Shown here in pieces: positions 214 through 20,205 of a stretch of 64,000 bases of DNA. Under the pieces are notes generated by a model. The model did no database searches, had not been told where the DNA came from, and saw only the letters and a list, made by a program, of their open reading frames with translations. The first letter of the stretch is position 1, and each line of letters opens with the position of its first letter. The position numbers and the translations under genes are program-made. The DNA comes from Podarcis filfolensis (lineage: Eukaryota), in assembly GCA_964270895.1 (NCBI GenBank), contig OZ185440.1; one strand, given 5' to 3'.

Positions 214-3200
214 GTTCTGCCTACAAGCTTGTGTGTTATGTCACTAACTGGGAACAGTACAGGGACCCGCCAGCCAAGTTCACACCAGATAATATAGACC
301 CACATCTGTGTACTCATGTGATCTATGCTTTTGCTGGCATGGACAACAACCGACTTACCACTATAGAATGGAATGACGTGGAACTCTACAAGAAACTTAA
401 TGCCTTAAAGCAAAGGCAAGCAGCTCTCACAATGAATGTATTCACATCATGATGTTTGTTTAACGGCTGCTTCTAGACAATCCCTGACAATAGCAGCAGA
501 TGTAGAAGCAAAAGAAGGAAGAGTCTCATGGGGTCCCTTCATGAATTATGTGTTTAATAAATTAATTAAAGTACTTTTAACCCACACCTCACCACATGAT
601 TTCAGAGCAAGGTACAATACAAGTTAAAATACAACCAACACAATTCCAGTATATGTAGTTGAAAGAGCAGGCAAGAACACAACACATCTTAAAAATTACA
701 GTATATAAACTCTCAAGGAAACCACCCACAGGTTCCTTCATTGCAGAAACAGTACATTGATATTGTTCTCAATATCACACAAAAGCACAGGTAAACCGGC
801 AAGTTTTTACCTCACAGAGATAAAAGTGTCTCTGCCAATCATGCTTTCAGGGGGAGAGCATTTCTTAATTAAGGTGCCACCATAGAAAGGTCCCCATCCT
901 TTGTCACCACATAATGTTTTCCCCTTGGAGGAGCAACAATAAGAAGGGTCTCCTTCTAAGATCTGTGAACATGGGGAAGTGTTCCTTTAGAACTAAGACT
1001 TTTAAAATATTCACCTAAAAATATTAAGGGTGGAAGTGCCAAACAAGAGTTTGAAAGTATGTGTTTCCTAGAGATACTTGTCCAAGAGCTAGGATTGGCT
1101 ATGGCTCCTATGGAGCATACACATGATGGTAAATCTGTACTTTTTGCTATATAATGTGAAAAAAGTAATTTGGAGATGCCTGGCATTCAGGGGGGTGGGG
1201 TTGGTTGGAGTGATGGCTGATGTTTCCCTGTGATGATCATTTTTTGCCTAGTAGGATTCTGTAACTATGTTTCTGAAGACACTTGAGAGTGGAATGATAG
1301 TCATCAGCACACATATTCGTTTTGTTCTGCCCTGCCTTAATCTCTGATGAAAGAGCTTTTGCAGGTTTTTGAAGCACCAGGTTGGGGAAGACTGCCTTGC
1401 AGGAATGCAAAAGACAGTTATGAAAGGCTGCACGCTTGTTCTTTTCACTGTAATAGCATCTGCTTGGCCAGCCTTCTCTGTCCTTGCTTGGAACTGCCAG
1501 CAATCTCAAGAACAACAGCAAGCTTTTAAGTTCTGTCTCACTTTGGGCTCTGTCCCTGGGAGTTGCTTTAATTTCCCCAATGGCCCTGAAAAACTTTTGG
1601 GATTCTGCCCACACCCCTGAAAATGAACTAGAGGAGCTCTCAAAAGCTCTTTGGTTCTGAAATCTATATCCTACAATTATAAGGAGCAACTGGTGATGGA
1701 AGTCTTGGATATTTTGAGGTGGAGAGAGTAAAATTCCTTTTTAATTATCACAAAATATTTGTGTAATGTTAATTCCACTGTATCTTTTTCTTGCTTTCTA
1801 GGAATAATAAGCTGCTCACATTGCTGGCGGTTGGAGGGGGAAGCTTTGACAACCAGAAGTAAGACCCTTCTCCTTCTTATACTCATAGAAAGAGCAGAGG
1901 GTGTTCATGAGATATAGCTTCCTAAGAAATTTGTGATTTGGGACACCCGGCTTAAGGCATTTTGGAGAGCTTGAGTCTGACATAAAGAGCATTTCCTTTT
2001 CTGAGAAATGAATGTCCTTCAAAGATCAAGGAACATTTTCCCTCTTTTGTTTCTGTGTACACTATTATTCAGTGCGAGCCTCCTTCCCAGAGACGCAGTA
2101 CAGGCAGATAGTGGTTTTAATAAGAGAGTCTTTTTTTTAACAGATTAAAGAAGAGGGGGGAAAGGAAGAACCCCCCCCACCAACAAATGCAAGCTCCTTC
2201 TCCTCGTTGAATCATTCCACTTCCCTCATTTCTTTTCACTTGGAGAGGTTTGGTTGAAAAATCCCCCTAAATTTGGCCAAAACCCCAAAAAGAGTAAAAA
2301 GGGACTACTCCTAATTAGTAGAATGGGTGGGAGGGCACTGTGATGTAAACTGGCCTCACTCCACTCATATCTTGGGGTGGAGGAGTAATTTGATTCAGTT
2401 TATATTTAAAGATGAACTTACCAGCCAAATGGCCTGGCAGGCTGCCTTTTATCCTTGTCCTTGTGTGCATCCAGGAGTCCTGAGTCTTGTCCTGGGTGTG
2501 GGGCCAAGCGCCACCATTGACCAGTTGATCCCACACCCAGAAGAACACCCAAAAGGCCCTGCCGCCAGTGGCCAATTTGGCGGCAGGCAGATGATCCGGC
2601 CTGCCATTCGCCGGTTCATGGGAGTGGGCTTGGGGCCCTGCCCACAAAGCCGTAAGGGGCAAACGGACTTACCAAATTCATACTTTTTGAAAAATTATAT
2701 AAACTGAAACCTTCAGAATTCATACTTCTTCAAATTTTCCAGTGCGATTCCCCAGGTTATGTGTCCAACAATGCACATAGTAGACTAAAGTGTGCATAAA
2801 AATGCCTTATATTGGTGAAAATTACATCCAAAACTGTATTAGATTAGGGAAAATTTCTTGCAAAAATGTGTATAAAACTGCATATAAAAATGTTTATTAT
2901 GAGAAATTCACACTAAAATATTGAAGAATCCTCATGAGGAGTTTCAATTTATTTATTCATTTTTGTGGATTGTTGCAGAAATAGAAGCGAATTTAAGATT
3001 TTAAAAATTAGAAACTTGGAGAACCAATATCGACAGATTGGTCCATCCTTAGTCCCTACTGATGTCAAAGCTCTTCCATTTTATAGCAGCTGTTCATGAT
3101 GCCCAGCAAAAAAATAAGAGTGAAATATAGGGTGATGCAAGTTGTAAAAGGCAGCTGTCAAAAAATAACACATTTCTTCCAGGTTCACTTCCATGATATC

Positions 3201-6200
3201 CTCTCCAGCAAATCGGCAGACATTTGCCACCACATCAATCGATTTTCTCCGCAAACATGGGTTTGATGGTATGGACCTTGATTGGGAATATCCAGGTTCC
3301 AAAGGCAGCCCTGCAGAGGATAAGCATCGCTTCACCATCTTGACTCAGGTATGAAAATAAAATAATATAGATGTCCATCCCAGCTTCAGCAAAGGGTGCT
3401 GGAAGCCCCTAGGGAGATAGCATGGATCATACTTACTTTGACAAAAATGGTCAAAACCTTTCTTAAAAACAACAGTGAATGATTGTAACAGAGTTTCTTT
3501 ATTTTAAAATGGTATTTAAAATTAATTTCCTGGAATGTATACTGTAGTGATAGAACATATGAGTACCTCTGAGCATGTATAGAGTGCTTTTGTAATCACA
3601 ACCAGCCTCCATATATTTATTCTTCCACATGAAGAACAATGGTTGGTTTGGGTCCCAGTGACAAACAGTGTAATGCTATGAATATCTACTCAGAAGCAGG
3701 TTCCATTAAATTCAATGGGGCCTAAGTGACCATACCTGAGAGAAAGCACTATTAAACTTAATGGACTTTTCTTCTCAGTACACTTGTATTGGATAGCACT
3801 GTGAATTACTAAATATGACAAAGAAGACTCAACCATCAAGAAGAAGAATTGCTCAGATGCAATCAAATAAATAAAAATAAATAGGCATGCCCAACTTGTG
3901 TGTGGAGATTTATCTTTATTTATTGATTAAGTTTATATACCATCCTTCATCCGAAGATATTTCTCATCATGATCTGTATGGGTGGAAATTTCCAGCCTGC
4001 AAAAGGCCAGCTGTCCTTTGAAAGGTGTTCTGTTCAGTTGCACATGAGCAGCACCCAACTGATCCTGCTATTTCTCTCTGAAGGAACTAATAGCTGCTTT
4101 TGAGGAAGAGGGCAAAAGAACAGGACGCCCACGGCTGTTGCTTTCTGCTGCAGTATCTGCTAGCAAAAACACCATGGATGCTGGATATGAAGTTGCTGCC
4201 CTGGGGAAGTGAGTCACATGGTTTCTGCTAAGCGACATGCCCTGCGTCAGAATCTCTGTTGAACACCAGCTCTGAATGCTCTAACTTCTAGGTTTGGACA
4301 AATTGCTAAAGAACTCAGGAGAAAGCCGTTCAAATGAAAAGCCTCTGTTTTTCCTCCCTTCTCTTTCTGCTTTATTGCTATTATTATTACTTATTAAATT
4401 TGTGCTGCTGCTGAACCTGTACACAGTACACTACACTGGCTCTCCCAAAGATCCAGCCCATTTCAATAATTTTGAACCTCCTCTGGGGATTGATGTCCTG
4501 GTTTTGTAGGCTCTCATAAACAGTGGTTTGTAGGGTGGTATTTATTGACCATTGTGTCTATGCAGCCATACTGTGCTGTAGGCTTTATATAAATAAATCT
4601 GGGCCTCATTCTACAGTGCCTTTGGAAATATTTCTGAGGGCTTTTAAAGGAGCTGCTACATCATGCTTATGTAATCACAGGTTGTTGTTTTTTAAATTAT
4701 TTGTCTATGAATCAAAATAACTGTCTTATTATTATCACTAACAGTGTGGCTGTTGGATCATAGATTCCTTAATGTTTGAAGAAATTGTTCCTTCATCTTG
4801 CCATTCCTTTCTGTGTGCATCCAGGAGTCTTGATTTAATCAACGTGATGACCTATGATTTCCATGGAAGTTGGGCACCTCAAACAGGACACAACAGCCCC
4901 CTGCACAGAGGTCTACCTTCCTATGACTCAACGCCCTTCTTCAACAGTGTAAGAACAAACAACACATTGTTGTTGTTGTTTAGTCGTTTAGTCATGTCCG
5001 ACTCTTCGTGACCCCATGGACTAGAGCATGCCAGGCACTCCTGTCTTCCACTGCCTCCTGCAGTTTGGTCAAACTCATGCTGGTAGCTTTGAGAACACTG
5101 TCCAACCATCTCATCCTCTGTCACCCCCTTCTGCTTGTGCCCTCAATCTTTCCCAACATCAAGGTCTTTTCCAGGGAGTCTTCTCTTCTCATGAGGTGGC
5201 CAAAGTATTGGAGCCTCAGCTTCACGATCTGTCCTTCAAACAACACATAACCCAATCTTAAACTCATAGCTAAATTCCAGTGACAATTTCCCCCACCCAA
5301 TGCACTAAAAACTGAATCAAGCCTAAGCATTAGGGTGGCCACTTGTACACCACCAAAAAGGAGGAGATGCGTCATGAAAAAGACCTGAACAGATTTTCAT
5401 GTCCTAATTTATATGTCTAGATGCAAAGTTAGAACCAATGTCTATAAATTCAAATAGACATAGAAAACATTTTACCATAGTGGGGAAGATGGGACCAAGT
5501 GACCTGTGTGCTAGCTCAGTCTGCTGTCCAGGAGCTGTTACTGGGTGACTTCAAGGCCCCTGCTCTCCCTTTGCATGATTCCTTATCTTTAAACTGGGCC
5601 TGGACTGGACAACTCTTCAAAAAGAGGACTTCCTCAAAGAGAGGACTCTTCTCTGTCCAGTGGAACACATGGCCACCCTAGCAAACATGGGTGGGTGATT
5701 GATGATGAGGCTCAAAATACATGTTCTGTGTAGCTGCATGAAGAATTCCTCTTTTAAAAAAAAGAAAGTTCAAAGGCAGAGTATATTTGAGTGAATTTCA
5801 GCTCAAAAATCACCTTCCCCAAGCTCCCCCAAGCTTTTTTTTTCATTTACAAACATTTTTGGAAGACACAGAGACCCTGACTTCCCACAGATGACAAAGC
5901 AGCTTGAGGAGGTTGATCCAAAGAGGGAAAGGGCTAAGCAGCCCCTCACTGCCTGCCCTTCCTCTCAGCTCCTCCCAAATACTTTTGTCTTTTAAAAAAG
6001 TAAACTCACCGAGGAAAGAATGACAGAAGTCTGCATAATTTGTCTGTGCTTCAGGAATATGCCATGAAATACTGGAAGGACAATGGAGCGCCAGCTGAGA
6101 AACTCATGATGGGCTTTCCAACATATGGACAGTCTTTCAAACTTGCTAGTTCACGAACCGACGTTGGTGCTCCAGCCAGTGGTGGAGGTTCTCCTGGACA

Positions 6201-8962
6201 GTACACCAAAACTTCTGGGATCTTGGCATATTACGAGGTAAATGGGCCTTTGGCGCTTTATTACAGAATATTGACGACTGAGAGCTACTATAATGTAACT
6301 GATCATGTTGGGGAGGCAGAGTCAATTCCCACAGCTGTAAATCTCAAAGGGTGGGCTTGGGCAAATCATTTTCTCTTAACACATCTTATTTTGACAGGGT
6401 TTTTGTGAGGATAAAGTGGGATGATTCTGTGGAAGGTGCCTAAGACATAACCAAAGTCTTAGGCAGCAATCCCATGAATATTTATTTGGGAGCCATGCCA
6501 CGGGTACAGCCCTGTTCAGGCCTTCGCCTGAATAAATGTGGACTAAAACCAGGGAAGGGACAGAAGTGTCCATGTATGTTTCTCTGTTTCAGACCTTCCT
6601 GAACTGAGAGGGAAGATCTGAAAGCTGACACTTAAGTGCCTTCAGCAGAATGTGCTTGGCATCTTCACTGTGCTTGGGCTCCTTGCCTTATCAGGGTTTC
6701 TGGTGGGAGGAGTCCAAGCACCTATGGGAACATTTGGGATGGCACTTGGGTATGCATTTCTGCTCTCCGCTTTCCATTTTCAGTCAACAAGCATTTAGAG
6801 GAATGCCTGATTGGGGGCTTCAGTGTTCCGTCAATAATGCATAGGACCAGCATGTAGAGCTGCAATCCATTGCTAGGGAGCACCTGTTATTCAATGCAGT
6901 GGGATGTACTTCTGAGTCAACAAGTGTAGGCTCACACTTTTAGAGAAAACCAGAACAATTTGGTTACCATATACTGGAGTGGGGATTCTTGTCCAGCTCA
7001 AGGGCCACAGGCAAATATTGGTAGAGTGATGGATGCGACTTAACTTAGCAAAGTAGTTTACCTTCCAGCCACACAAAATCCATAGGTTTCATCCATCCAT
7101 AGGCCTCCATCCAGACAAGCTTAAGGTGTGATCACATGCCAAGAGCACATTCTAGCCAAGCAAAGGCACTCATGGAGGGTGTGGTGCAGGGCCATTGAGG
7201 CGTGTGCCCTGGGGAGAGTCCTGAAGGTCAGAGGGAGAGGCTGTGGAAGGTCTCATTTGGCTGTTGTATACAGTAAATTAATGCTGCAGACCATCAAACG
7301 CTGTACTCTTCTAGCAATAAAATAATCAATGATTCTGATAGGGAAGCTTGGACTGATTAACTTTTAGGATTATAGACTTTGTTTTTATTTTTGTTCATAC
7401 CCCCTTGAGTTTCTGCTCTTTATCTAAACAGGGATTCTATCATTTTGACAGGTGTGCCCATTTTTAAAGGGAGCTACCAAGGGATGGATCGAAGAACAGA
7501 AGGTTCCTTATGCTTTCAAAGCTGGAGACTGGGTTGGATATGACGACGAGAAGAGTTTTCAGTTTAAAGTGTGTCACTGCTTTGTGATAATTGCTACATC
7601 CTATGAGAATGAAAATCCTTTAGGCCCTCTAGCTGCTAACCAAATTTACAGCCACATTCTCACAGTCATGGGCTGTATCCAATGCCGTTATTCCACTAGT
7701 GCAGCAGACTCATGCAATGGAACTTCCCCCTTTTCTCCTATCCCTAGTGGCCCCTGACATGAAAAGTTTACAGCATCCTCTGGAACAGATTTTGAGGGCA
7801 CACAGGGAGAGGAGCGGAATTGGAATTGGAAGTCCAGTTGCATGGGTGGACCTTTGTGTACACATGTTCTTTAAGGCTCCATGTTATTTAAAATCTTCTT
7901 CTTTTCCCATGATACACCGTTCTGTTCCTCAACTCCATTCTTCCCCCTCTAACAGACAATCCGAATTCTGGGGCCTCTGAACATGTTTTTCTTTTTTTTT
8001 TTTTAGTGTTCAACTCAAATATTTTTTGGTACTTCTGGAAACCCTGGGATCCCCCAGGGCATGCTGATACCCTCTTTTATTTATAAGTAGCATTGTTTGA
8101 GTACCATCCTGTTGGCTGGCACACAACATTTTGGAAGTAGAAGGAGTGTACAATATTAAGAATTGTCTGCCTCATTCTTATTTCATCCTGGGAGTAAACA
8201 GAAATAAAATTCTGCTTCATCCCCTACACAAAATTAATGTTAGCAGCTCCAAGTGCTCTTTAGCCACCCTCTGTGGTTACCTCACAGAAAGAAGGAGCAT
8301 CTTATTTATGTCACCACAGAGTGGCACACTCTCGATTCACAAAAAATGGGTTACTGAGCCACTGTACGTTAGCTCAATTTCCTTTGAATGTTATGCTTAA
8401 ATGTAAATTGTATCTTTTTGTAGACTGCTTTGAGGTTGTTGGTTTTTTCTTTTTACAATCAAGTGGTATATAAAATGTCATCTAGTCCAACTCCCTGTTG
8501 TGTAGGAATCACAACTAAAGCACACATGACAGGTGGCCATCCAATCTCTGCTTAGAAGCTTTCAAGGAAGGAGAGGCCACCACCTCCCGAGGGAGTCCAT
8601 CCACTGCTAAACAGCTCTTACTGTCAGAAAGCTCTTCCTGATGTAAAGCCAGAATTTCCTTACGTATATTGTAAATGTGCTGCAGTGTCCAGAAGGAATT
8701 TGTAGTTGCCTGTTATTAGCAAATGATAGAAGAGGCATGTTATGTGACAACTATTATGGAATGGGTACATAAGCACTAGTCTGTGGGTTATTTACAAATG
8801 TCCCCCCCCCCCTCAACTTCTTTGCAGGCTGAGTTTCTGAAGAGGGAGAATTATGGAGGAGCCATGGTTTGGACTCTGGGGATGGATGACTTCTCTGGCA
8901 AATTCTGTGGCCAAGGAGCCAATGTCCTTGTGAATAAGCTTAAGGGTCTCCTAGGAAACTGA
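214..8962 (+). CDS. Gene A: GH18 chitinase (5'-partial), catalytic motif intact, no hinge/CBM14; OVGP1-lineage candidate
   Basis: Exons 214-415 (GC donor), 1802-1858, 3183-3348, 4084-4208, 4825-4948, 6055-6237, 7452-7568, 8828-8962 (TGA 8960-8962). Lengths 202/57/166/125/124/183/117/135 keep frame. Motifs [46 protein letters not shown]. Signal-peptide exons 1-2 are not in the window; about 387 aa if they total 55 nt as in the paralogues. Confidence 0.92.
4968..5236 (-). mobile_element. RTE/BovB-type LINE 3' fragment in gene A intron 7
   Basis: Minus-strand translation [25 protein letters not shown] is typical of the BovB/RTE RT C-terminus. (CAA)n tail; direct repeat CAAACAACACAT at 4956-4967 and 5237-5248 (TSD). 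Confidence 0.85.
8480..8645 (-). mobile_element. CR1-like 3' fragment
   Basis: GTCATCTAGTCCAAC...GGCCATCCAATCTCTGCTT...CCACCACCTCCCGAGG resembles reverse-oriented reptile CR1 3' ends; recognised by eye only. Confidence 0.5.
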
Positions 8963-9088
8963 GGTAATGACAAATTAGGCTGCAAGGCGCATGTTTCATT
9001 AAGCTACCAATCTATCGTCCAGTGAAGTTTGAATTAGGCATACTAATTACATCAGTTTCAACCCTTATTTTCTAACCTCTCTTTTTAG

Positions 9089-9255
9089 ATTTGAATGTTT
9101 GGAATAGTCTCAAGGGGATTCATGTGATTAAACCCTGCGATATGAAAGCATTTTAAATATTATATATATATAGTCTCTCAGCTGTAGTCTTCTAAGTGGC
9201 TCACAACATGAATACAAGCCACACAACAAATAAAGTTGCTAAAATTGAAATTAAA
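9089..9255 (+). other. Putative non-coding terminal exon (3' UTR) of gene A
   Basis: Donor G|GTAATG at 8964; CTAAC branch-like motif 9072-9076, pyrimidine tract and TTTTAG acceptor ending 9088; AATAAA 9229-9234. The 3' end is approximate. Confidence 0.55.
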
Positions 9256-10469
9256 TTGAGACAAGAGGAGAAACCCACTTTGAAAGGGCAGCAAAAGCTA
9301 AAATAGAAAGTTAAGCAAAGCTTGTGCATTGCCTACTTACCTGGAAGTAAAGGCCACTAAACTCAATGGGACTTGAGTTACTCTCCATGTGGCCCCAAAC
9401 TATATGCACCTCATGGATGCTATTTAGTAAACAACAACCAAGCATGCAGAGGCCTATGGAATGCGCAGTGTCATGTCTGAGTTGGTCTAGAGTCTGAGGA
9501 AGTGTTGCAATACAGGGTTAAATGTTTCAGGGTTGTTTTTGCTCTGCTATGCTCTTGATAAATAGGAAGTCTTGCAAATATCTGATGTGCTTCTGACATG
9601 CATTTGTTCTCCTATGACAGAACATGAAGTATCACACCAAGCAAATAGAGGAATGCAACGTGTTGTGGAACAAAGATGGATCCATGTTATATCTCTCACC
9701 TCCTTGAACCTTTGCAAGCGAAAAGATACTTCAAGATATTCGCTGCCTATCAGCATGTGATCATCCAGACTTGAGCAACCTGTTGTGGAATCTTCCATTA
9801 CAAACTTTTGTTTGAGTCTGCTGCGTGTCTCATTTTTCTTCCTTTACTGTTAATCAGATTTTGAATATCGTGAGATTTATGCAGAATTGGAATGCACATG
9901 CTCTTTTTAGGCAACTTTGATTTTCTATTTCACTATGCAATCTAATAAAAAAAAAATTGCATTTACTTGTACTTTAAATCATTTTAAATTGTGGCATAAT
10001 GGTGATGACAATTAAGGCATTTCTTTCAGGCATTTGATATTTATAACTTTAGGTGCCTCTCCCTTAGCTATTTGTTTCCACCTGTCTTTAAAAGAGAAAG
10101 TTTATAAAAATCAAAGACACAGGGAGCTTCACCTTATTCTAGTTTCCAGGAAGGTGTTTGTTGCTTAGTGAGTACCTGAGTCTTGCTGTCAAGGTCCAAA
10201 AGAGGATCAGATGGCTTTTTGCTTGGTTAAAAGGCAGAGGCAGCAGTGCTTAAACGAGGAGAGATTATTATTTAATCAGCCTGAAATGTAAGAAATTGTA
10301 TTTATTTTGAGAAAAAAATCTAATCATCACTCCCTCAATTTTTTTAAATGAACCCCAAAGTGTATAGCTCTACTCCCTGGAAGAAAGATCAAGGACTGCT
10401 ATGAGAGCCAGAAATTCAACTAAATTCTGCTGCCCTTCTGATTGGCTAAGAGACGGAAAGTTAGAATAG

Positions 10470-10925
10470 TGTTATGACTTTGCAAGACACTAATCTAGAC
10501 AAAAAATGGGAACACTTCCCCTTGAGGTTTGAGATCGTTACTTAGAAGACAATGCCAGAGTTTTTGTTAGGAGGAAGTTTTAGGATTTAAGTTGGCTGTG
10601 GAGTGATCAAGGGAAAAAACTGTCAGTCTGTTAAATGCAGCAAGTTGGAAACGGGGTGGTGGTGGTGGTGGTGGTGGTGGCAGAACTCAAGTTGAGCTGC
10701 CTGTTTTGAATAAGAGATTGTAGCCATGAGAGAGACAGGACCCCCTTGGAGTGTAATGCTTTGAACCCCTGCATTGTAGGCTCAGGTTGTATATATGTGT
10801 AAATAAGCCATACATCATAAAGACACCACAGTCTTCACTGTGCCTCGTTTCCAAAGAAAACCCTGGGTAAGCATCTGGAACCCTTGGAATTTTTCAACAC
10901 TGGGAAATTGGGGTGGCGTGTAACA
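10470..10925 (+). mobile_element. Solo LTR (ERV/Gypsy-like), 456 bp
   Basis: Termini TGTTA...TAACA, flanked by 4-bp direct repeat ATAG (10466-10469, 10926-10929); internal (GGT)n and TATA/AATAA-like motifs. Confidence 0.65.
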
Positions 10926-12057
10926 ATAGTGTCTATAAGTGAAGCTGGGGAGCAGCAGGAGGAAGAAAGACATGGAAATTGGAAGAAAAAGCTGGAATAG
11001 AGAGTGCTACAGAAGATTTGGACTCCAGGGACAAGTTGTTGGACAATAAGTCCTATCATCACTGACTATTGGCTATGCTGGTCAGGGTTCATGGCAGCTG
11101 GAGTTCAACAACATCTAAAGGGCCACAGATTCTCCATTCCTGATTTAGCTTGTGTTCTGTTTCCAGTAACGGTCAGATTCAACTGGAGGCTCAAAAGCAG
11201 GGCCTGATGGCTTAGTAAATCATCCCCATAGTTCTTAGAGGACAAGAAGTTCTGTGCAAGTTCATTTTAGCTTTCACAGCTCCGCTCTGTCAGTTTGACT
11301 ACATTGATTGTTGTTGTTTAGAGGCTTCTCAAAGTCTCATTTCCAGCATCATCAGCAATGGTTTTAGATTGCAGTAGCAAAACTAGAGGAAACTACTAGC
11401 TATGTTGCTGTTATTCAGCTCCACTTTGAGCTTAGGCTCCCACTTCTCTGCTATATCGCGTTCTCCTTTTTTCAACATGAAGCATTAGTATAGAGTCTTA
11501 TCTTGCACTGATATAGTGTCATGGAGGTGTGCCTTGCAGAAACAGCCTTGGGGATTTTAGAGATATATAATCTCAAAGTGACTTTTTATGGGGGGCTGAA
11601 GGCCAGTTGCATAAGTTTTTGGCATGGTGTATGGCTGCAAGTCACAAACTAATGTTCTCCTAGGGTTTTTTTGCTTTTTAAGCTGTCATTTAATGATAAC
11701 CACTTGTTGGGCATGAAGAATGGCAAATTGTGCAAGAATACTTTGGCCCCATTTGGACACAAATATCATTGCTTATTTATCTGACATCTGCATGTTGAGC
11801 CGTGTGCCTTGCATGCTATAAATAGTTGTCTAGAAAGGCTATTAGAGCCTCTTCACATATGATTACTCAACACTTGAGCAAGTTTAGACTAGGAATGGAC
11901 AAATCCGTCCATTCTGCTTTTATCTTAGTTTTCTGATCGTCAGCTCGCTTTCCACATTTCTGCATTGGGTTGCAGGGTTATTTTCTTTAAAAATTTCTCC
12001 TGAAAATATCATTTTAATGTTATGTTTTAATGCTGGGACCTTGGAGTGAAGAGTGGG

Positions 12058-12058
12058 C

Positions 12059-12111
<53 letters not shown>
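12058..12111. repeat. (TTG)n microsatellite
   Basis: Direct reading; explains the poly-Q ORF 11920-12165. Confidence 0.95.
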
Positions 12112-12112
<1 letters not shown>

Positions 12113-12461
12113 CCTTTGCCTACACAGAGGCTGACAACACTAGGGTTTGTTTTCAGCTTAACCACATATGTTATTGGGTTGTAAGATTTCTACAATTGAA
12201 CATTAAGTGATTAATTGAACATTCATTAAAATCATTGGGACGTTTGCTGTCGACGTTTGCTGACATCCAAATCTGTCAAAAATCAGAAAAAGATAGGCCT
12301 TTGTGGTTCTCTTCATACACACAATGTAATTTTTCATAAAGTCAACACTTTTTCCATCCTTGAAGTTAGATCTGTTTTCTGTCCCGGGATTTATTCTTCA
12401 GCCACCTGTGCACTTTAGCTGCCAGATGTATGCCCCTTTAGCAGGTGTGTGGCTCCCATAC

Positions 12462-12483
12462 TGATAAGTGAGCAGTTTATAAG
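12462..12483 (+). promoter_or_regulatory. Gene B core promoter: GATA site plus TATA-like box
   Basis: TGATAA 12462-12467 and TTTATAAG 12476-12483, about 45-65 nt upstream of the ATG at 12529. Confidence 0.5.
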
Positions 12484-12528
12484 GCTGTGTTGGATTTCCC
12501 CAGATGGGCCATTTCCTCTGAAAAACAG

Positions 12529-15500
12529 ATGGGGAAGATGCTGCTGTGGGCAAGTGAGTGATCCTGTGTGTAATTTTACGTCTTGAGAAACATAAAGAGA
12601 CATTTCTTCCTAGAAACAAGGGAGGTGAACTTTGAGCTTAGACTTGGGAATGAGAACACCATCAGGTTTGCTTATGAGACAAATAACCCTGGAAATGAGG
12701 TGTTTAGCAAATTGAGTCAGATGGTTTTATGCATACTGTAATGGTGTTTTGTTGTTTTTTAATCTTTTGTAGGTCTGGCCATTTTGCTGCACTTGCAGCT
12801 TGGTAAGCAGGATTCTTTATTGCTCATAAATTTATTCCTCAAAAATAGATGGAATATCTGAGACAAATTGAGGGTGGGGGAGATGCTTTCAGGTTTGATA
12901 TTGTCGTTTTCATTTCTGCCCCCTCCTGGGAGCTTGCAATACTAAGGGTGTGATTATGAGTAGCAGCAACCAGCACAAAGGAATGTAACATTAAGAATGA
13001 GAGACTGTATCTTTGCATTATATAAATCCACAGATTTCTGTAAAGGAAATATATGGTCCCTCATTCTGGGGGTGATAGGAGTTGTAGTCAAAAACACCAG
13101 CAAAGGCTGGGCTAGAGACTATAACTTTCTAATTGAGTATTGTGCATGTATCTTAATCACAATGAGTTTCCTAAATCAAGAGGTAAGCGCACAGGGCCAG
13201 ACTGAACTAAGTTGTTGCACGAGCAGAATGAGATCTGCTTGTGCAATGGGACTTTGCTCTGGAAGGCTGAAGGAAAACCTAGAACAGGTTTAAGAGGTGG
13301 GAGGAGAGGGACAAAATTCCTGTTGCGTGAGCTGACCTCATTCCATTAACACATATAGTATGCCGGTTTTAGAGTCAGTTGCTTTGATTTCCATGTTGTT
13401 CTTGCCTATGACATTCACATCACAATGTTCTTTCTTACCTCAGGATCTTCTTACAAGCTGGTCTGTTATTTCACGAACTGGTCCCAGTACAGGCCTGATC
13501 CTGCTAGATATAAACCAGCAAATGTGGACCCCTGCCTGTGCACACATGTCATCTATGCCTTTGCTACTATGAGCAATAACAAGATCGCCCCCTATGAATG
13601 GAATGATGACGTCCTCTATCCACAGTTCAATGGTCTAAAAGAATAGTTAGTAAATTCTTTAAACACTTGGTAATTACGAAGAATGAACACAGATTGGTTA
13701 ATCTCAAAATAATAAGGCTTGTTTGGACCTGATCTGATTTTCTAAGCCCCCTAGTTGTAAATGTTTGATTCAGTTTTTTGGGGAAAAACAACAACCCTGG
13801 AAGGTTAATATTAGCTGCTGCAGAGCTGCAAAGTACTCTCTACTCTCTGCTCACTAGGCCAATGGCCAGAAGAGAGAAGGGCAGACAAGTCAGTTCTGGG
13901 CATAGCTGTCAAGTGTCCCTTATTTGAAGGGACAGTCCCTTATTCCAGTGCCATGTCCCACTGCTGTCCCTTATTGATGGATGTCCCTTAAATGTCCCTT
14001 AAATGATGTCCCTTAAATTTCAAAGGAAGCAGCTCCTCTCCCTCCCTCCCTGCTGGCCAGCGAGGAGGGAGGCTCCAACTGTGTTGCTTGGCTGTGTTGC
14101 TCACCCAATAAGAAGTCTAAGAACGACTGGGGGGTGGAGCTTGCATGCCTTGTGTGTGGCTAGTTAATGCAAGCTGAGGGGGTTTTTGAATACTGGATGC
14201 CATTTTGTTGCACATGCTGCTGCAAACTTTGCAGTGCAAAGCCAGGCCGGGGAACCATCTTAAGTTGAGGCTGCATAGGCCTTGTGGTGCATGTGATTCA
14301 GATTCTATTCAGTTGAACCTCTGGTTACAAAGTTGGTTGGACAGTGTTCTCAAAGCTACCAGCATGAGTTTGACCAGACTGCAGGAGGACAGGAAGACTG
14401 GAGTGCCTGGAACAGGTGAGGCTGCAGGTCCCTTATTTTGGCTGCTGGTCCCTTATTTTCAAGGCTGCTGGTCCCTTATTTTCAAATCTGTAAGTTGACA
14501 GCTATGGTTCTGGGCACTGCTACAACAGCCCAGAGTCTCCCTAGTGCTAAAGAATCTATCCTGTGCTATTGTCTAATATAGGGATCTCAGATCTGCAGGA
14601 GTCTTAGTCCAGGCAACCCATCACTGTTGAAACCCGCTTTAAAAAGGTAAAGGTAAAGGACCCCTGACAGTTAAGTCCAGTCGCGAATGACTCTGGGGTT
14701 GAGGTGCTCATCTCACTTTACTGGCCAAGGTAGCCGACGTTTGTCCACACAGGGTTTTTCCGGGTCATGTGGCCAGCATGACTAAGCCGCTTCTGGAGAA
14801 ACCAGAGCAGCACACAGAAATTACCTTTCCGCTGCAGTGGTACCTATTTATCTACTTGCACTTGACATGCTTCCCCTCAAAAATATGAGACTGACTTATA
14901 CTCTGTCAGAGCATTAGTTCTGTAGTCAAACACTATTCACACTGATTGGCAGCTGCTGTCAGGCAGAGGGCTCTTCCTCATCCTGAGATCCTTCCATTGG
15001 AATGGCCACTGGCTGATTATTATTATTATTTTGCATACAGTACATGCTCTCTACTCACTGAACTGACTGTTTTATGCCTTTTGCCTGCCAGTTCCTTCTT
15101 GTATCTGTGTCCCAGAACATGCCACCTCTCCAGGACTCAGGGAAAACTTAACTTGACATTAAGCACATTATTTAGTATAGGAGAGTCCCAACCAGAGAGT
15201 CTCAAGGGAGGTCCTAGCATGGGCAGAGAAGCTGTTACAACATTAACAATCTGGAAATGCTGTGGGGACAATGGCTTGATGTACCTGTCTGCATGTCTAT
15301 TATTTGCACTGGGAGGTAATCTCTTCCTAGTACCAGTGACAGCCTTCCTCCCAGGGCACAAATAGGGGTTGTGGGGAGGCTGCTGCTCGATATCAATGGA
15401 TCAAAGTCCCTTCCCATGATTCTGTGGCCCCAACCCAGATCACTCCTCATGGCTATTTAGTAAAAAAAAAAAAAAAAGAACAAGCACACAGTCCTATGAT

Positions 15501-18500
15501 CAACACAGTATCTAGTTTGGTCCTCAGACCACGCTTAATGGCAGTTCACGAAACAATAAACGATGATGGGAAAAGCAACAATTGCATATTATACATTTAT
15601 TTCCTAATTTTTCCAATCCCTTCCATAGCAATGAGAAAATGGTTACCCTTTTGGCGATTGGAGGATGGAATTTCGGCACCCAGAAGTGAGAACTTTTCTT
15701 TCACATGTATAATGAACAAGATGGGGAGGGGAGGGGGGTAGTTTGTGGCTACTGCTGCTGGCCTGCTGAGGAAGAGGCAATGAATGGATAAAAGGGATGT
15801 GGAGGATTTTCACGAACCTCTGGTGGATAGAAAGATAAGACCACTGTGGAGTTAAAGGAGGAGAGTTGGGGGTTTTTTTTGAAGAGTCAGAGGGAAGTAT
15901 GGGATAAGCAAGTACAGTAGAAACATTTTGTGGGGAAGGAAGTGGTAAGAGAAGCTGAAACAAGCTAGCATTGCTTAATTTTGTGGTTCATATCGTGTAT
16001 ATCCTCATACTTTCAGTAACTTAAAAACAAATCCGGTTTTGTTAGGTTCACCACAATGGTTGCTACAGCTGCTAACCGCAAGACTTTCATCGATTCAGTG
16101 ATTACGTACCTTCGTCAGTATGGGTTTGATGGGATTGATCTGGACTTTGAATACCCAGGTTCTCGGGGCAGCCCCCCTGAGGATAAGCATCGTTTCACTA
16201 TTTTAGTCCAGGTGAGGAAGCTTTGCCCAGCATCCTGTGAACATCGTGCCTTGCTCTCTTTGCATAAACAAATGTAATACGGTATGTGAATGAGTCGATT
16301 ATTTCAGATCCTGAAATCACAAAGCAGATGCTGATTGATATGGTTGCTCAGTCACACATTACCTTTTCTCATGTGATGGGAGTTATCCTCAGCCAGGAAG
16401 GCTCCCATCAACAACAGACACGCTTGTCCAAATAAAGCACTAATTCCAGCTAAATGTTGCTAGAAATAAGGTGCCACTGCCAATTACACAATCACATAAT
16501 AGAATATCCTTTCCTAGAAAAAGGAATATACTTCACTCCATTTCCAGGTTTATAAGAATGTTAAAATAATTTGAAATTTCTTCATATTTAGCTATGTTTA
16601 AATGACAATCAGCTGAGTGTACTACTACTACTACTAATTTATTATTTGTACCCCCCATCTGGCTGGGTTTCCCCAGCCACTCTGGGTGGCTTCCAACAAA
16701 GATGAAAAATACATTAAAATGTCACACATTAAAAACTTCCCTGAACAGGGCTGCCTTCAGATGTCTTCTAAATGTCAGGTAGTTGTTTATCTCTTTGACA
16801 TCTGATGGGAGGGCGTTCCACAGGGCGGGCGCCACTACTGAGATTAGTTAGATAAAGAAGCAATCTCAGAAGCAATGGCTGAGCTTTCTAAATTCCTCCT
16901 TATATGTACATAATGGCACCATAATGGCACTTTGGTTCATATACCAAAGAAGTGGGATTTCTTCATATATATATATAAAAGATGTTGCATACCACCAATT
17001 TTTGAAACCTTGCACACAATGAATTAGCTAGAACTGAATGCAGCTGTTAACTTTACTCACCCATGCCCTTCTCCAGGAAATGCTGGCTGCTTTCTCAAGT
17101 GAAGCCACCAGGAGTGGGCAACCCAGACTGTTGATCACAGCAGCTGTATCTGCTGGCAAAGCAACCATTGATGCTGGATATGAAATTGCAGAGATAGGAA
17201 AGTAAGTGACAATGTGCTAAATTGGGGACTTGTGAAAATAGGACAAAGCAAGGCAAAATTCATTATTCATTTGGAGGGAATTATTAATTATATTAAGGAA
17301 AAGGTGCATACAGAGAAATATATACATGTCAACAATATGAGACAATATATTTGTGCAGTTTTGCCAAAGATTTAAACTTGGTTGTTTGACATTCAAGAAT
17401 TTAGATGCAGCATTTTGAATTCTTTGAGTGACCACTAAAGGTCTAGTCACAGTTCAATATAAGTGGCTGCAATATCCACTTACCTGGGAGTAAGTCCCGT
17501 TTAACTTTATTAAGTTTACAGATAGATATGCATAGGATTGCAATGCTGGACCCAAAGGACACTAAGCTTTAGCTTTCTAGTCAATGTCCTCTTTAGCTTG
17601 TTCTGTGATAAAAATGAACAGTGTAGTCAACTTGAACTTCATTTGTTGGGAAGGTTGGATGAGAATTTAACAACTGGACAAATATCCTTGCAGAAAAGGG
17701 GAGCAGGAGCTGAGGATCATATAGCTAGCTGTTTAGCAAACTACAAGTCAGATGTACACCATATTGTTCAAATGCATACAGTTTTTGTATGGTTTCATGC
17801 AATCTTCAAAAGCTAATGTGAAAGACAATTGGGTTCAGCCCACCAGTATCAAGGGGATCTTTATTTCAGCGTATGGATCCATTAGGCAAGTTGTTATTAC
17901 TCTGCTTTTTATTTATTTATTTGCACAAGGGTTCTAGATTTCATCAGTGTGATGACCTATGATTTCCATGGAGGATGGGACACCTTCACAGGTCACAATA
18001 GCCCCCTGCATGTGGGATCTGCAGATAAAGGCGATTTTGTGTACTTCAACTGCGTAAGGAAATGCTAACAAACTATTGTTTGCTCAGAGCCAGTAAAAAA
18101 AATGGTCAGTTCATACCTATATTTATTATGTTCATATTGAAAGGAATTTGCCATGAAATACTGGCTAGAAAATGGGGTTCCTGCTCAGAAGCTTATGATG
18201 GGGTTTCCTACTTATGGCCGTACCTTTAGGCTTACCACAGCTGACACATCGGTTGGCGCTCCTGCATCTGGTGCCGGATCCATTGGACCTTACACAAGGG
18301 AAGCTGGTTTCTGGGCTCATTATGAGGTAAATGAAACATTTAAAAAGGACCAAAGTTTAAAAGCATGCAGTATTTAAAAATATCTAAGCAAAGTGCATTT
18401 TGTCTCTCAGCAGTTATAATCCTGTTTTACAATACTAATGTCTTGCCGTTCACCCATCCGGGTTGCTTATAATCAAGATTACATACAATTGTTTTATATA

Positions 18501-20205
18501 ATTCCACCACATCCATTTTCATCCTCTTTAACAGGTTCCTTAATATGTTCTGATACTTTTTCTTGAACTTCAAAAACTGCTGTGGACTTCGCATATAGGG
18601 GAGAAGTTTTTCCCATGGACTAGAAAAGGTTTCCAGTCCTCCTAAAAAGATTCTAAATTTGTGTCTCTCATCAGTGCCATTGATTTTGCCATCTCTGCAC
18701 AATCCATGATTTTCGCCAGCTGTTCTTCCTTTGAGGGCATTCTTTCCTTCTTCCACTTCTGTGCCTAAAGATTCCTTGTCACTGTGGTTACATGCATAAA
18801 TACAATTGAAGCTTCCTTTGGAATTTCACTGTCTAGTATCCCCAGCAGGAAGGCTTCTGGCCTCTTGGGAAAAGTCACTTAAAAAAAATAATCATTATTT
18901 ATCAGGTGCATGGTTTTTCCTTTTTGGTATAATTACAGGAAATGCTGCTAGGAATATTACATTAGCCACAGAAGTGCACCTCAAAGTATAGAATATATTT
19001 CACTGATAAAACACCAAGTGCCTGTACAGTTGTTTGCTGTTGTTTGCTAACATGAATGTTCCTTGACAGATTTGTACGTTCTTACCAGAAGCGACAACCG
19101 TCTGGATTGAAGATCAGAAAGTCCCTTATGCCTTCCTGGGGAATGAGTGGGTTGGGTTTGATGATTTAACCAGCTACAAGTACAAGGTATGTTATTTTTT
19201 TTCTAGTGCATCTAACAGATTTATCTGTACCCACACTCAAAGTACCTTGCAAGATTTACCAGTGCAATGTTTGAGCTTTATAACAATGCTTGGTGCATAT
19301 GTGTGTGTGTGTATATGTACTGCCGACACTGATCTTGGGATATTTTTTTGCGAGTCAGCTGCTGACATCATTGAATCAACTTTAAGTTAACATTGACTTT
19401 TAGGAATGTAGTCAAGCCCTTAGATGCATTGATCTAGTCCAGTGTTTGTCTTTCCCAAACCCCATGAGTCTAAAGAACAGCACCCCAACAATTCATGTCA
19501 TGTTAGTGCGTGCAACTGACATCAAATGTGATGGGAATATCTTGTACTTGCTTTCTGCGCAGGTTGAATTTTTGAAAGCAAACAACTTTGGAGGGGCCAT
19601 GGTTTGGGCCATTGACCTTGATGATTTCCTAGGCACTTTCTGCAATACGGGGCCATATCCTCTGATATCACATTTGAAGACACTCCTTGACATACAAACT
19701 CCAGGTAGGTCAATTTATTGAGAAGAATTCTGCACTAAGACGTGTATATGCATGAGCGCACATGCGCAGAGCGCCATGCTGCAATCTGGAGGTGCAAGGA
19801 AACAAGTAGCCAATGATAAACAAATTATGTGATGTGCAAAGACACTTCCCAATATGTTTTAGCAAAAGGGAAGCAATTTAATGCACACCCAATCCCCTTT
19901 GAAACCTCTGTGGGGATGTTCCCTCTAAGTGACTGGCTTTGCACTTTAGTACAACTGCAATGTATTAAACAACTTCTCTCAAGTGTCTTCTCTGATTATA
20001 TTCTCCACCCTTAGGTTGTGTAGCTCCACCCCCTCCAACAGCCCCACCTCCTCTTATTTTCTGTGAAGATAAAGCTGATGGTATCTATGCCAATCCGGAT
20101 GACAAATCAAAATTCTATGAATGCTCTGGGGGCAATACTGTTTCCAAGAGTTGCGGAGAAAGTCTGGTGTTCGATGAGAGCTGCAAGTGTTGTAACTGGC
20201 CTTGA
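12529..20205 (+). CDS. Gene B: complete GH18 chitinase with signal peptide, short Pro-rich hinge and CBM14, 453 aa
   Basis: Exons 12529-12553, 12773-12802, 13444-13645, 15629-15685, 16046-16211, 17077-17201, 17930-18053, 18144-18326, 19070-19186, 19563-19704, 20015-20205; all GT-AG; 1362 nt. [19 protein letters not shown] signal, [11 protein letters not shown] motif, six-Cys CBM14 ending CKCCNWP*; AATAAA 20230-20235. Confidence 0.95.
13901..14506. mobile_element. Non-autonomous DNA transposon (MITE) in gene B intron 3
   Basis: Terminal inverted repeats CATAGCTGTCAA / TTGACAGCTATG; internal repeated GTCCCTTA motifs. Confidence 0.6.
14644..14871 (-). mobile_element. Sauria-type SINE, 5'-truncated
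   Basis: AAGGTAAAGGTAAAGG tail and body homologous (reverse complement) to the copies at 32017 and 61430. Confidence 0.8.
18430..18760 (-). mobile_element. L1/Tx1-like ORF2 C-terminal remnant in gene B intron 8
   Basis: Minus-strand frame [43 protein letters not shown] resembles reptile L1 ORF2 ends. Confidence 0.55.

Follow-up and report, generated by a model that had tools for sequence, protein, structure and literature searches.

A candidate reptile counterpart of OVGP1: a lizard gene from a conserved, reptile-wide lineage of single-domain chitinases

The locus and the structure of gene A

We analysed a stretch of 64,000 nucleotides (nt) from the lacertid lizard Podarcis filfolensis (contig OZ185440.1, assembly GCA_964270895.1), which we call the window. 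It holds four GH18 genes, A to D, and a PIFO-like gene. Our subject is gene A, on the plus strand at 214-8962. Its eight exons join into a single open GH18 frame of 368 amino acids (aa) that runs to a TGA at 8960-8962, and its introns have AG acceptors and GT donors throughout, with the sole exception of a GC donor at 416-417. Judged from the sequences, gene A is a real, conserved lizard gene of a reptile-wide single-domain chitinase lineage. It is a close relative of mammalian OVGP1 (oviductin) and the best available candidate for its reptile counterpart. The features of gene A are given below; residues are numbered as in AMCase, and a slash within a splice site marks the exon border.

214-415, plus strand: coding exon 3 (202 nt), acceptor ttccag/G at 213/214, PF00704 match of 47.1 bits, with Y27, W31, His49 and C51
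416-417, plus strand: GC splice donor of a GC-AG intron (AAG/gcaagc), directly after exon 3
1802-1858, plus strand: coding exon 4 (57 nt), G99 codon at 1839-1841 and S100 codon at 1842-1844, replacing the usual Trp99-Asn100
3183-3348, plus strand: coding exon 5 (166 nt), FDGMDLDWE at 3262-3288, PF00704 match of 54.7 bits
4084-4208, plus strand: coding exon 6 (125 nt), with an 11-residue stretch that agrees with the OVGP1 consensus
4825-4948, plus strand: coding exon 7 (124 nt), MTYDFHG at 4847-4867, with M210 and, at 4853-4858, Y212-D213
6055-6237, plus strand: coding exon 8 (183 nt, 61 aa), with Y267, Q269, T297, I300 and L301, PF00704 match of 42.2 bits
7452-7568, plus strand: coding exon 9 (117 nt, that is 39 aa)
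8828-8962, plus strand: last coding exon, with W360, ending in ...LKGLLGN; TGA at 8960-8962, then G/GTAATG

The 57-nt exon was detected by a similarity scan only; it encodes LLAVGGGSF, as against LLAIGGWNF. A first-pass annotation, made by a model from the letters of the window, had described a 39-aa exon 9 and the lack of Cys49, and both are indeed found (position 49 is His). An exon 9 of 117 nt is also present in gene B and in the CHIA2-like gene of the takin, while in genes C and D this exon has 120 nt.

The first two coding exons of gene A, which encode the signal peptide, lie beyond the 5' edge of the window, which begins 213 nt before exon 3. We mapped the orthologues of Anolis, the Galapagos tortoise and the Chinese alligator to their own loci. 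Each has 10 coding exons (of 22-25, 30, 202, 57, 166, 125, 124, 183, 117 and 135 nt, with 118 instead of 124 nt in the alligator), and the closing AAC TGA is identical. Given this ten-exon structure, the window misses only the two short signal-peptide exons.

The homologue of the 202-nt exon is found in all three species. In Anolis it is followed by a GC donor as well (AAA/gcaagt; positions 11921-11922 of locus L001), whereas the tortoise and the alligator have GT. Since Anolis has the same GC donor, the intron of gene A is a genuine GC-AG intron rather than damage, and one conserved in squamates (lacertid and Anolis).

A lineage found across the sauropsids

Gene A was searched as exon pieces and via its orthologues. 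Three single exons exceed the PF00704 cut-off of 29.6 bits (42-55 bits); for the Anolis orthologue the score is 350.7 bits, across profile positions 1-317. A first profile search, on a fish scaffold, gave mainly teleost chitinases and no orthologues; the fused lizard gene models discussed below surfaced in it. A profile made from the exon pieces of gene A and two lizard models retrieved about two dozen proteins, mostly of 384-392 aa, in which GH18 is the only Pfam domain. We call this group the A clade. The identity to gene A is 82% for Anolis, 78% for a python, 76% for a viper, 69-74% for turtles, 72% for Varanus and Rhineura, 70% for a skink, 68% for the tuatara, 67% for a gecko and 65% for the alligator. 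These orthologues are already public, under the NCBI name 'acidic mammalian chitinase-like'.

Although crocodilians, turtles, the tuatara and squamates are all present, there is no bird among the search matches, and the gene may have been lost in birds. Neither is there a genuine mammalian member among these matches. A panda protein that is 68% identical to gene A was considered as such and rejected: it comes from an intronless contig of 1785 bp, and in both trees that include it, it nests among the snakes next to Vipera (95/87; here and below, support is given as ultrafast bootstrap (UFBoot)/Shimodaira-Hasegawa-like approximate likelihood ratio test (SH-aLRT)). The entry is most likely a contamination of the panda assembly by squamate cDNA.

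The pairwise ratios of non-synonymous to synonymous substitution rates (dN/dS) between gene A of the window and the Anolis, tortoise and alligator genes range over 0.157-0.225, with 0.165 for the comparison with Anolis. Spliced transcripts, which the first-pass annotation had named as a check of the gene, do exist for its orthologues: full-length spliced A-clade mRNAs are present in RNA sequencing (RNA-seq) assemblies of a skink-like and a colubrid-like species. The closest solved structures for the Anolis orthologue are those of AMCase and CHIT1 (PDB 3FXY, 8FG5 and 1GUV), with E about 1e-148 over the full length. Gene A is thus a functional gene under constraint.

We consider it very improbable that gene A is, in this lizard, a pseudogene in decay or an artefact of annotation. 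The GC donor at 416 is non-canonical, gene A has lineage-specific changes in the cleft (Q269 and T297), and among the database matches there was no lacertid protein at least 90% identical to it, although lacertid gene B was matched. However, all eight exons are open and in phase, the GC donor is common to Anolis, the dN/dS against Anolis is the 0.165 given above, and the terminal branch of gene A in the 100-row tree described below (0.14) is about as long as that of Anolis (0.13). In lacertids, gene A may have been missed by annotation or fused with another gene model.

Catalytic and cleft residues

The catalytic motif of gene A is intact, with D136 at 3274-3276, D138 at 3280-3282 and E140 at 3286-3288. 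The first-pass annotation had listed the same residues, and Y212/D213, as intact; they lie at 3262-3288 and 4853-4858. We compiled a residue table for 21 A-clade rows and 11 OVGP1 rows. The A clade retains Y27, W31, F58, D136, D138, E140, M210, Y212, D213, W218, Y267 and W360; the DxxDxDxE motif, Y212/D213, Y267 and W360 are present in all A-clade rows with a residue there (20-21 of 21), except for one Glu at 136.

The substrate cleft tells a different story. Site 99 is Gly in 18 A-clade rows, Ala in one and a gap in two, and Trp in 11 of 11 OVGP1 rows. As for the subsite residues of the active AMCase/CHIT1-type cleft, gene A retains W31 and W218 and has G99, S100, Q269 and T297, so that the pattern W99, N100, R/H269, E297 is absent. 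At site 269, 19 of 21 A-clade rows have Arg, whereas gene A of the window has Gln. Site 297 varies within the clade (Glu is commonest, with 8 of 21 rows) and is Thr in gene A; site 100 is variable across the clade, too. Gln269 and Thr297 are lineage-specific changes at sugar-contacting positions. OVGP1 shows the reverse of the A-clade pattern: its rows have F, T or C at 138, L or M at 140 and L210, and Trp99 is retained.

In GH18 enzymes Trp99 stacks on the +1 sugar, so that its loss should weaken aglycon binding and leave the chemistry untouched. Because Trp99 is Gly in gene A, the description 'catalytically intact' in the first-pass annotation is true of the catalytic residues and not of the cleft. 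With D136, D138, E140, M210, Y212, D213, Y267 and W360 retained, the protein probably still cleaves GlcNAc-beta-1,4 bonds (GlcNAc, N-acetylglucosamine). With no CBM14, no +1 Trp99 and replacements of N100, R269 and E297, its ligands would be soluble or short GlcNAc chains, hydrolysed or bound in a lectin-like manner, and not crystalline chitin. The protein should accordingly be pictured as a putative soluble-substrate hydrolase or lectin-like binder, where we infer activity, substrate and tissue alike.

The end of the protein and the loss of CBM14

Gene A ends straight after the GH18 domain. As had been claimed for it, there is neither a hinge nor a CBM14: the stop follows ...LKGLLGN, and when 8963-13400, the 4.4 kb before gene B, was searched for a CBM14 or hinge relic (tblastn and blastn, queried with the CBM14 exons of B, C and D), the matches were at chance level only. 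The stop at the end of exon 10 is conserved in the A clade and is the same in Anolis, tortoise and alligator. OVGP1, on the other hand, continues past that point into a mucin-like tail (about 150 further residues in the pig), and the takin CHIA2-like gene splices a 139-nt exon 10 to a 282-nt CBM14 exon. The ancestral OVGP1 is reported to carry two of the six CBM cysteines still (PMC11789784). Since the A clade stops at exon 10 where OVGP1 reads through, the two losses of CBM14 are separate events and not a shared derived trait.

In the lacertid (8960-8970) and in Anolis (L001 21458-21468), though not in the tortoise or the alligator, the stop is followed by G/GT. This looks like a leftover exon-10 donor that was kept only in squamates; behind it, no remnant of an exon 11 was found in gene A.

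Phylogenetic position

OVGP1 sequences were gathered by a search with the last 83 residues of the tuatara orthologue, which gave 86 word-sharing candidates, mostly OVGP1 clusters. The 100-row tree was calculated by maximum likelihood under LG+C20+F+G4 with posterior mean site frequencies (PMSF). In this tree, CHIT1/CHI3L1 are basal and lie outside an 89-row group with gene A, and canonical CHIA, including genes C and D, forms a clade of its own (99/96). What remains of interest is a superclade of 61 rows (100/93) in two parts. The first (28 rows, 99/92) comprises amphibian genes, mammalian CHIA2-like genes, gene B and the reptile Z genes described below, and does not include the A clade; we refer to it as the B type. 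In the second (33 rows, stem 0.10), OVGP1 (100/100, stem 0.73) and the A clade (100/97) are joined at 90/87. The sister of the tetrapod superclade (94/84) is a clade of ray-finned-fish chitinases, two teleost members of which are named 'chitinase, acidic.2' by NCBI, together with lungfish and chimaera.

A tree had been proposed as a check of the earlier suggestion that gene A is an enzymatically active pro-orthologue of OVGP1. One half of the expectation was borne out, as gene A groups not with CHIT1/CHI3L1 or canonical CHIA but in the superclade of OVGP1. The sister relationship is less stable: when long and fragmentary rows are dropped (70-row set), OVGP1, the A clade and the B type form an open trichotomy. 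Under the mixture model, constraining the A clade with the B type is 1.3 log-likelihood units (lnL) worse than the free tree (approximately unbiased (AU) test, 0.46), and constraining OVGP1 with the B type is 5.4 lnL worse (AU 0.31). Under LG+F+G4, the three fixed topologies compare as follows (O, OVGP1; bp-RELL, bootstrap proportion by resampling of estimated log-likelihoods):

(A,B): best, delta lnL 0; AU 0.61; bp-RELL 0.48
(O,A): 1.7 lnL worse; AU 0.50; bp-RELL 0.46
(O,B): 17.9 lnL worse; AU 0.16; bp-RELL 0.07

None of the alternative pairings is rejected by the AU tests. Residues that are exclusive to one pairing of the three branches are distributed 1:1:1 when counted strictly and 2:1:0 when counted loosely, and so few of them cannot decide on the pairing. 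The segments that the first-pass annotation had named as shared with OVGP1 are present in the consensus of eleven OVGP1 proteins. Most of the features in which gene A was likened to OVGP1 are ancestral, however: RLLLSAAV also occurs in CHIT1-type proteins, Leu301 in 15 of 37 other rows, and the 39-aa exon in gene B and the takin CHIA2-like gene.

How do these results bear on the relationship of the two groups? If the A clade is, in the strict sense, the orthologue of OVGP1 in sauropsids, both go back to a single gene of the amniote ancestor, and the reptile copy keeps the catalytic state that OVGP1 lost. We would put this at somewhat short of an even chance. The best 100-row tree favours it with the 90/87 join, and so do exons a, d, e and h and the search with the tuatara C-terminus, most candidates of which are OVGP1 clusters. 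Also, the taxa are complementary, as orthology predicts, with a sauropsid-only A clade and a mammal-only OVGP1: there is no true mammal in the A clade, and no sauropsid match is named OVGP1 or groups with OVGP1. It has to be set against this that the join disappears in the 70-row set, that ((A,B),OVGP1) is equal or better under LG+F+G4 by a delta lnL of 1.7, that just one shared residue is strictly exclusive, and that CBM14 was lost by different routes. Furthermore, the stems of OVGP1 and the A clade are the longest in the superclade, which makes long-branch attraction possible.

Potentially, the A clade is nearer to the CBM14-bearing CHIA2-like/gene-B/Z type, that is, a sauropsid offshoot of CHIA1/CHIA2 with its own loss of CBM14, in which the OVGP1-like segments are ancestral or convergent. 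We regard this as a possible but rather doubtful explanation. Among the three fixed topologies it is the one that LG+F+G4 prefers, and under the mixture model it lies 1.3 lnL below the free tree. In addition, gene A is 60-62% identical to gene B and to the takin CHIA2-like protein, as compared to 51-52% to OVGP1. The free 100-row tree and exons a, d, e and h nevertheless favour OVGP1 with the A clade, and the B-type clade is well supported (99/92) without the A clade. Two further points in its favour, the slot beside PIFO and a glycine shared with some turtle genes, come from the chitinase array.

Synteny and the chitinase array

The other genes of the window are the following:

13444-20205 (about), plus strand: gene B, GH18 plus CBM14, DLDFE motif; lies between gene A and PIFO
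minus strand: genes C and D, CBM14 present, AMCase type
about 21.7-27.2 kb, minus strand: PIFO-like gene, collinear with the SHIPPO-repeat gene beside the Anolis orthologue

The individual exons of gene B match a Podarcis muralis protein at 93-100% identity. The first-pass annotation had placed gene A downstream of PIFO and on the opposite strand; the strands are as described, and gene B lies between the two. In Anolis, the tortoise and the alligator, the order is Z (GH18 with CBM14, plus strand), A (plus) and PIFO (minus). In two turtles we see Y, Z and A in that order, where Y, upstream of Z, is a CBM14-bearing chitinase gene just like the reptile Z gene. Among the fused lizard gene models, that of an agamid runs from Z to A and that of a skink from Z through A to B. 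WDR77, which had been expected upstream, is not what we find there: the upstream neighbours of A in turtles, alligator and Anolis are further chitinases, with GH18 and CBM14.

In mammals, CHIA1-2 and OVGP1 lie together on this side of PIFO, as a result of tandem duplication (PMC11789784). Tail-to-tail with PIFO, a takin and a golden mole have a CBM14-bearing CHIA that belongs to the 28-row clade, and in the golden mole a second such gene lies upstream of it. Pig OVGP1 has no neighbour within 10 kb. We therefore dropped position as a proof of OVGP1 identity. Of the claim that gene A occupies the position of OVGP1, the side of PIFO is correct, but the slot is that of a CHIA1/2-type gene and not the far-end slot of OVGP1. 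This speaks against OVGP1 orthology, as A stands beside PIFO in sauropsids and a CBM14-bearing CHIA in mammals, and it agrees with the A clade being nearer to the B type, since the CHIA2-like gene holds the PIFO-adjacent slot in takin and golden mole. Tandem arrays rearrange, however, so that the mismatch weakens OVGP1 orthology without excluding it.

Gly99 is also found in three rows of the CBM14-type clade, which we take to be turtle Z-type genes and thus neighbours of gene A; one is the Platysternon protein P0016, and the others would include P0320, P0325 or both. This GGG hints at an exchange between neighbours, as would suit a relationship of the A clade with the B type. Gene conversion among the array genes is a possible cause, and it would blur the trees too.

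Two further observations concern the relatives of gene A. Gene B reads FDGIDLDFE at 16125-16151, with Phe replacing Trp before the catalytic Glu, and likewise in its Podarcis, caecilian, turtle, agamid and skink relatives; OVGP1, like gene B, has Phe at the site preceding the catalytic-Glu position. The armadillo gene that falls together with an opossum gene is found immediately downstream of a gene for a pepsin-like aspartic protease, and this branch may be at a locus other than the PIFO array.

Discussion

Our preferred explanation, with a probability of roughly 0.6, is that gene A represents, in lacertids, an old lineage of secreted single-domain GH18 proteins that extends across the sauropsids and would act on soluble or short-chain substrates. 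Besides this A clade, the superclade contains two more branches, mammalian OVGP1 and the CBM14-bearing CHIA2-like/gene-B/Z type. In this explanation, the lineage would have arisen on the OVGP1/CHIA1-2 side of PIFO, as a member of the tandem array of chitinases. The hinge and CBM14 would have been removed by a stop codon that closes exon 10, and Trp99 would have changed to Gly. Both changes would be older than the split between lepidosaurs and turtles/crocodilians, and purifying selection has acted on the gene ever since. The gene model, the clade, the selection and the residues are established by the data above. As to the sister group of the A clade, OVGP1 seems to be the likeliest candidate, at close to an even chance.

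Several points weigh against this explanation. The secretion of the gene A product is inferred from the orthologues, as the signal-peptide exons are outside the window, and the lacertid protein at least 90% identical to gene A is missing from the database matches mentioned above. The per-exon likelihoods conflict, as exons f and g point to A+B and not, like the four exons named earlier, to OVGP1+A, and all of the trees may suffer from gene conversion among the array genes. Finally, with Trp99 lost and Q269 and T297 in place, hydrolysis could be weak or absent despite the intact motif.

The interest of the lineage lies in its relation to OVGP1, a classic example of a binding protein derived from an enzyme; to our knowledge the origin of OVGP1 has been traced only within mammals. 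A reptile lineage that branches at the node of OVGP1, is maintained by selection and has retained its catalytic residues provides an outgroup for the function before OVGP1 and for the age of the oviduct role. If the A clade is indeed the orthologue, the 'oviductin' of the amniote ancestor was a catalytically competent chitinase; mammals then lost the active site and gained a mucin tail, whereas in reptiles the active site persisted, the protein was truncated and Trp99 was lost. The A clade also bears on how a GH18 cleft tolerates the loss of its +1 tryptophan. Still, the finding is a modest one: fold and chemistry are standard, the orthologues are annotated under a generic name, and we hold OVGP1 orthology itself to be a little less than evenly probable.

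There is a possible link to reproduction. In the uterus of the skink Chalcides ocellatus, a contig labelled OVGP1 (its best BLASTX match in Ensembl) has 29,231 reads in pregnant as compared to 217 in non-pregnant animals (PMC3318437). By raw counts this is about 135-fold (log2 7.1 as tabulated), a lead and not evidence for the A clade. We tentatively suggest, as something that may well turn out otherwise, that sauropsids have in the A clade their true orthologue of OVGP1, that this pregnancy-induced skink transcript is an A-clade gene, and that the role in the reproductive tract is an old one.

Comparison with known chitinases and chitolectins

Placental CHIA1/CHIA2-type chitinases have been described (PMC5955627, Emerling 2018; PMC11789784, Allio 2025), and within mammals OVGP1 groups with CHIA1 and CHIA2 (PMC11789784). 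We provisionally assign the takin, pig and golden-mole proteins to CHIA1/CHIA2, by their position beside PIFO. Proteins of this type (including gene B and Z) resemble gene A in superclade, strand, array and the catalytic Asp/Glu residues, they have its exon lengths (202/205, 57, 166, 125, 124, 183 and 117 nt), and their identity of 60-62% is the highest outside the A clade. They keep the hinge, CBM14 and Trp99, and many of them have DLDFE (Phe139), none of which is found in gene A.

The catalytic domains of AMCase and CHIT1 (3FXY, 8FG5, 1GUV) have the same set of catalytic residues as gene A. Unlike gene A, AMCase has H269 and W301 and CHIT1 has R269, and both have W99 and, in the full-length protein, CBM14. 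Canonical CHIA (AMCase, CHIA3-5; genes C and D) has hinge and CBM14 and forms a separate clade, while gene A has no CBM14 exon.

CHIO (Hussain and Wilson 2013, as used in PMC10234404) is described as a group of vertebrate chitinases separate from the five classes of mammals; in later work it is taken to be a clade of fishes (PMC10234404). We assume that the ray-finned-fish clade next to the tetrapod superclade belongs to CHIO; if so, gene A is related to CHIO in a broad sense. The fish members of this putative CHIO clade keep CBM14 and Trp99, unlike gene A.

OVGP1 (oviductin, MUC9), a GH18 chitolectin, shares with gene A the tetrapod superclade, the side of PIFO and the absence of a functional CBM14. 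The consensus of the eleven OVGP1 proteins carries SPGKYTKQAGFLAYYE, and gene A has the corresponding stretch, with SPG.YTK..G.LAY as the common pattern; the two also share a further stretch of 19 residues followed by.(M/.)DD, as well as Leu301 and Leu362. On the other hand, OVGP1 has F138, L140 and L210, is catalytically dead and keeps Trp99, whereas gene A has D138, E140, M210 and Gly99. OVGP1 has a long Ser/Thr-rich tail, whereas gene A has no mucin-like extension and stops seven residues after ...NKLKG.

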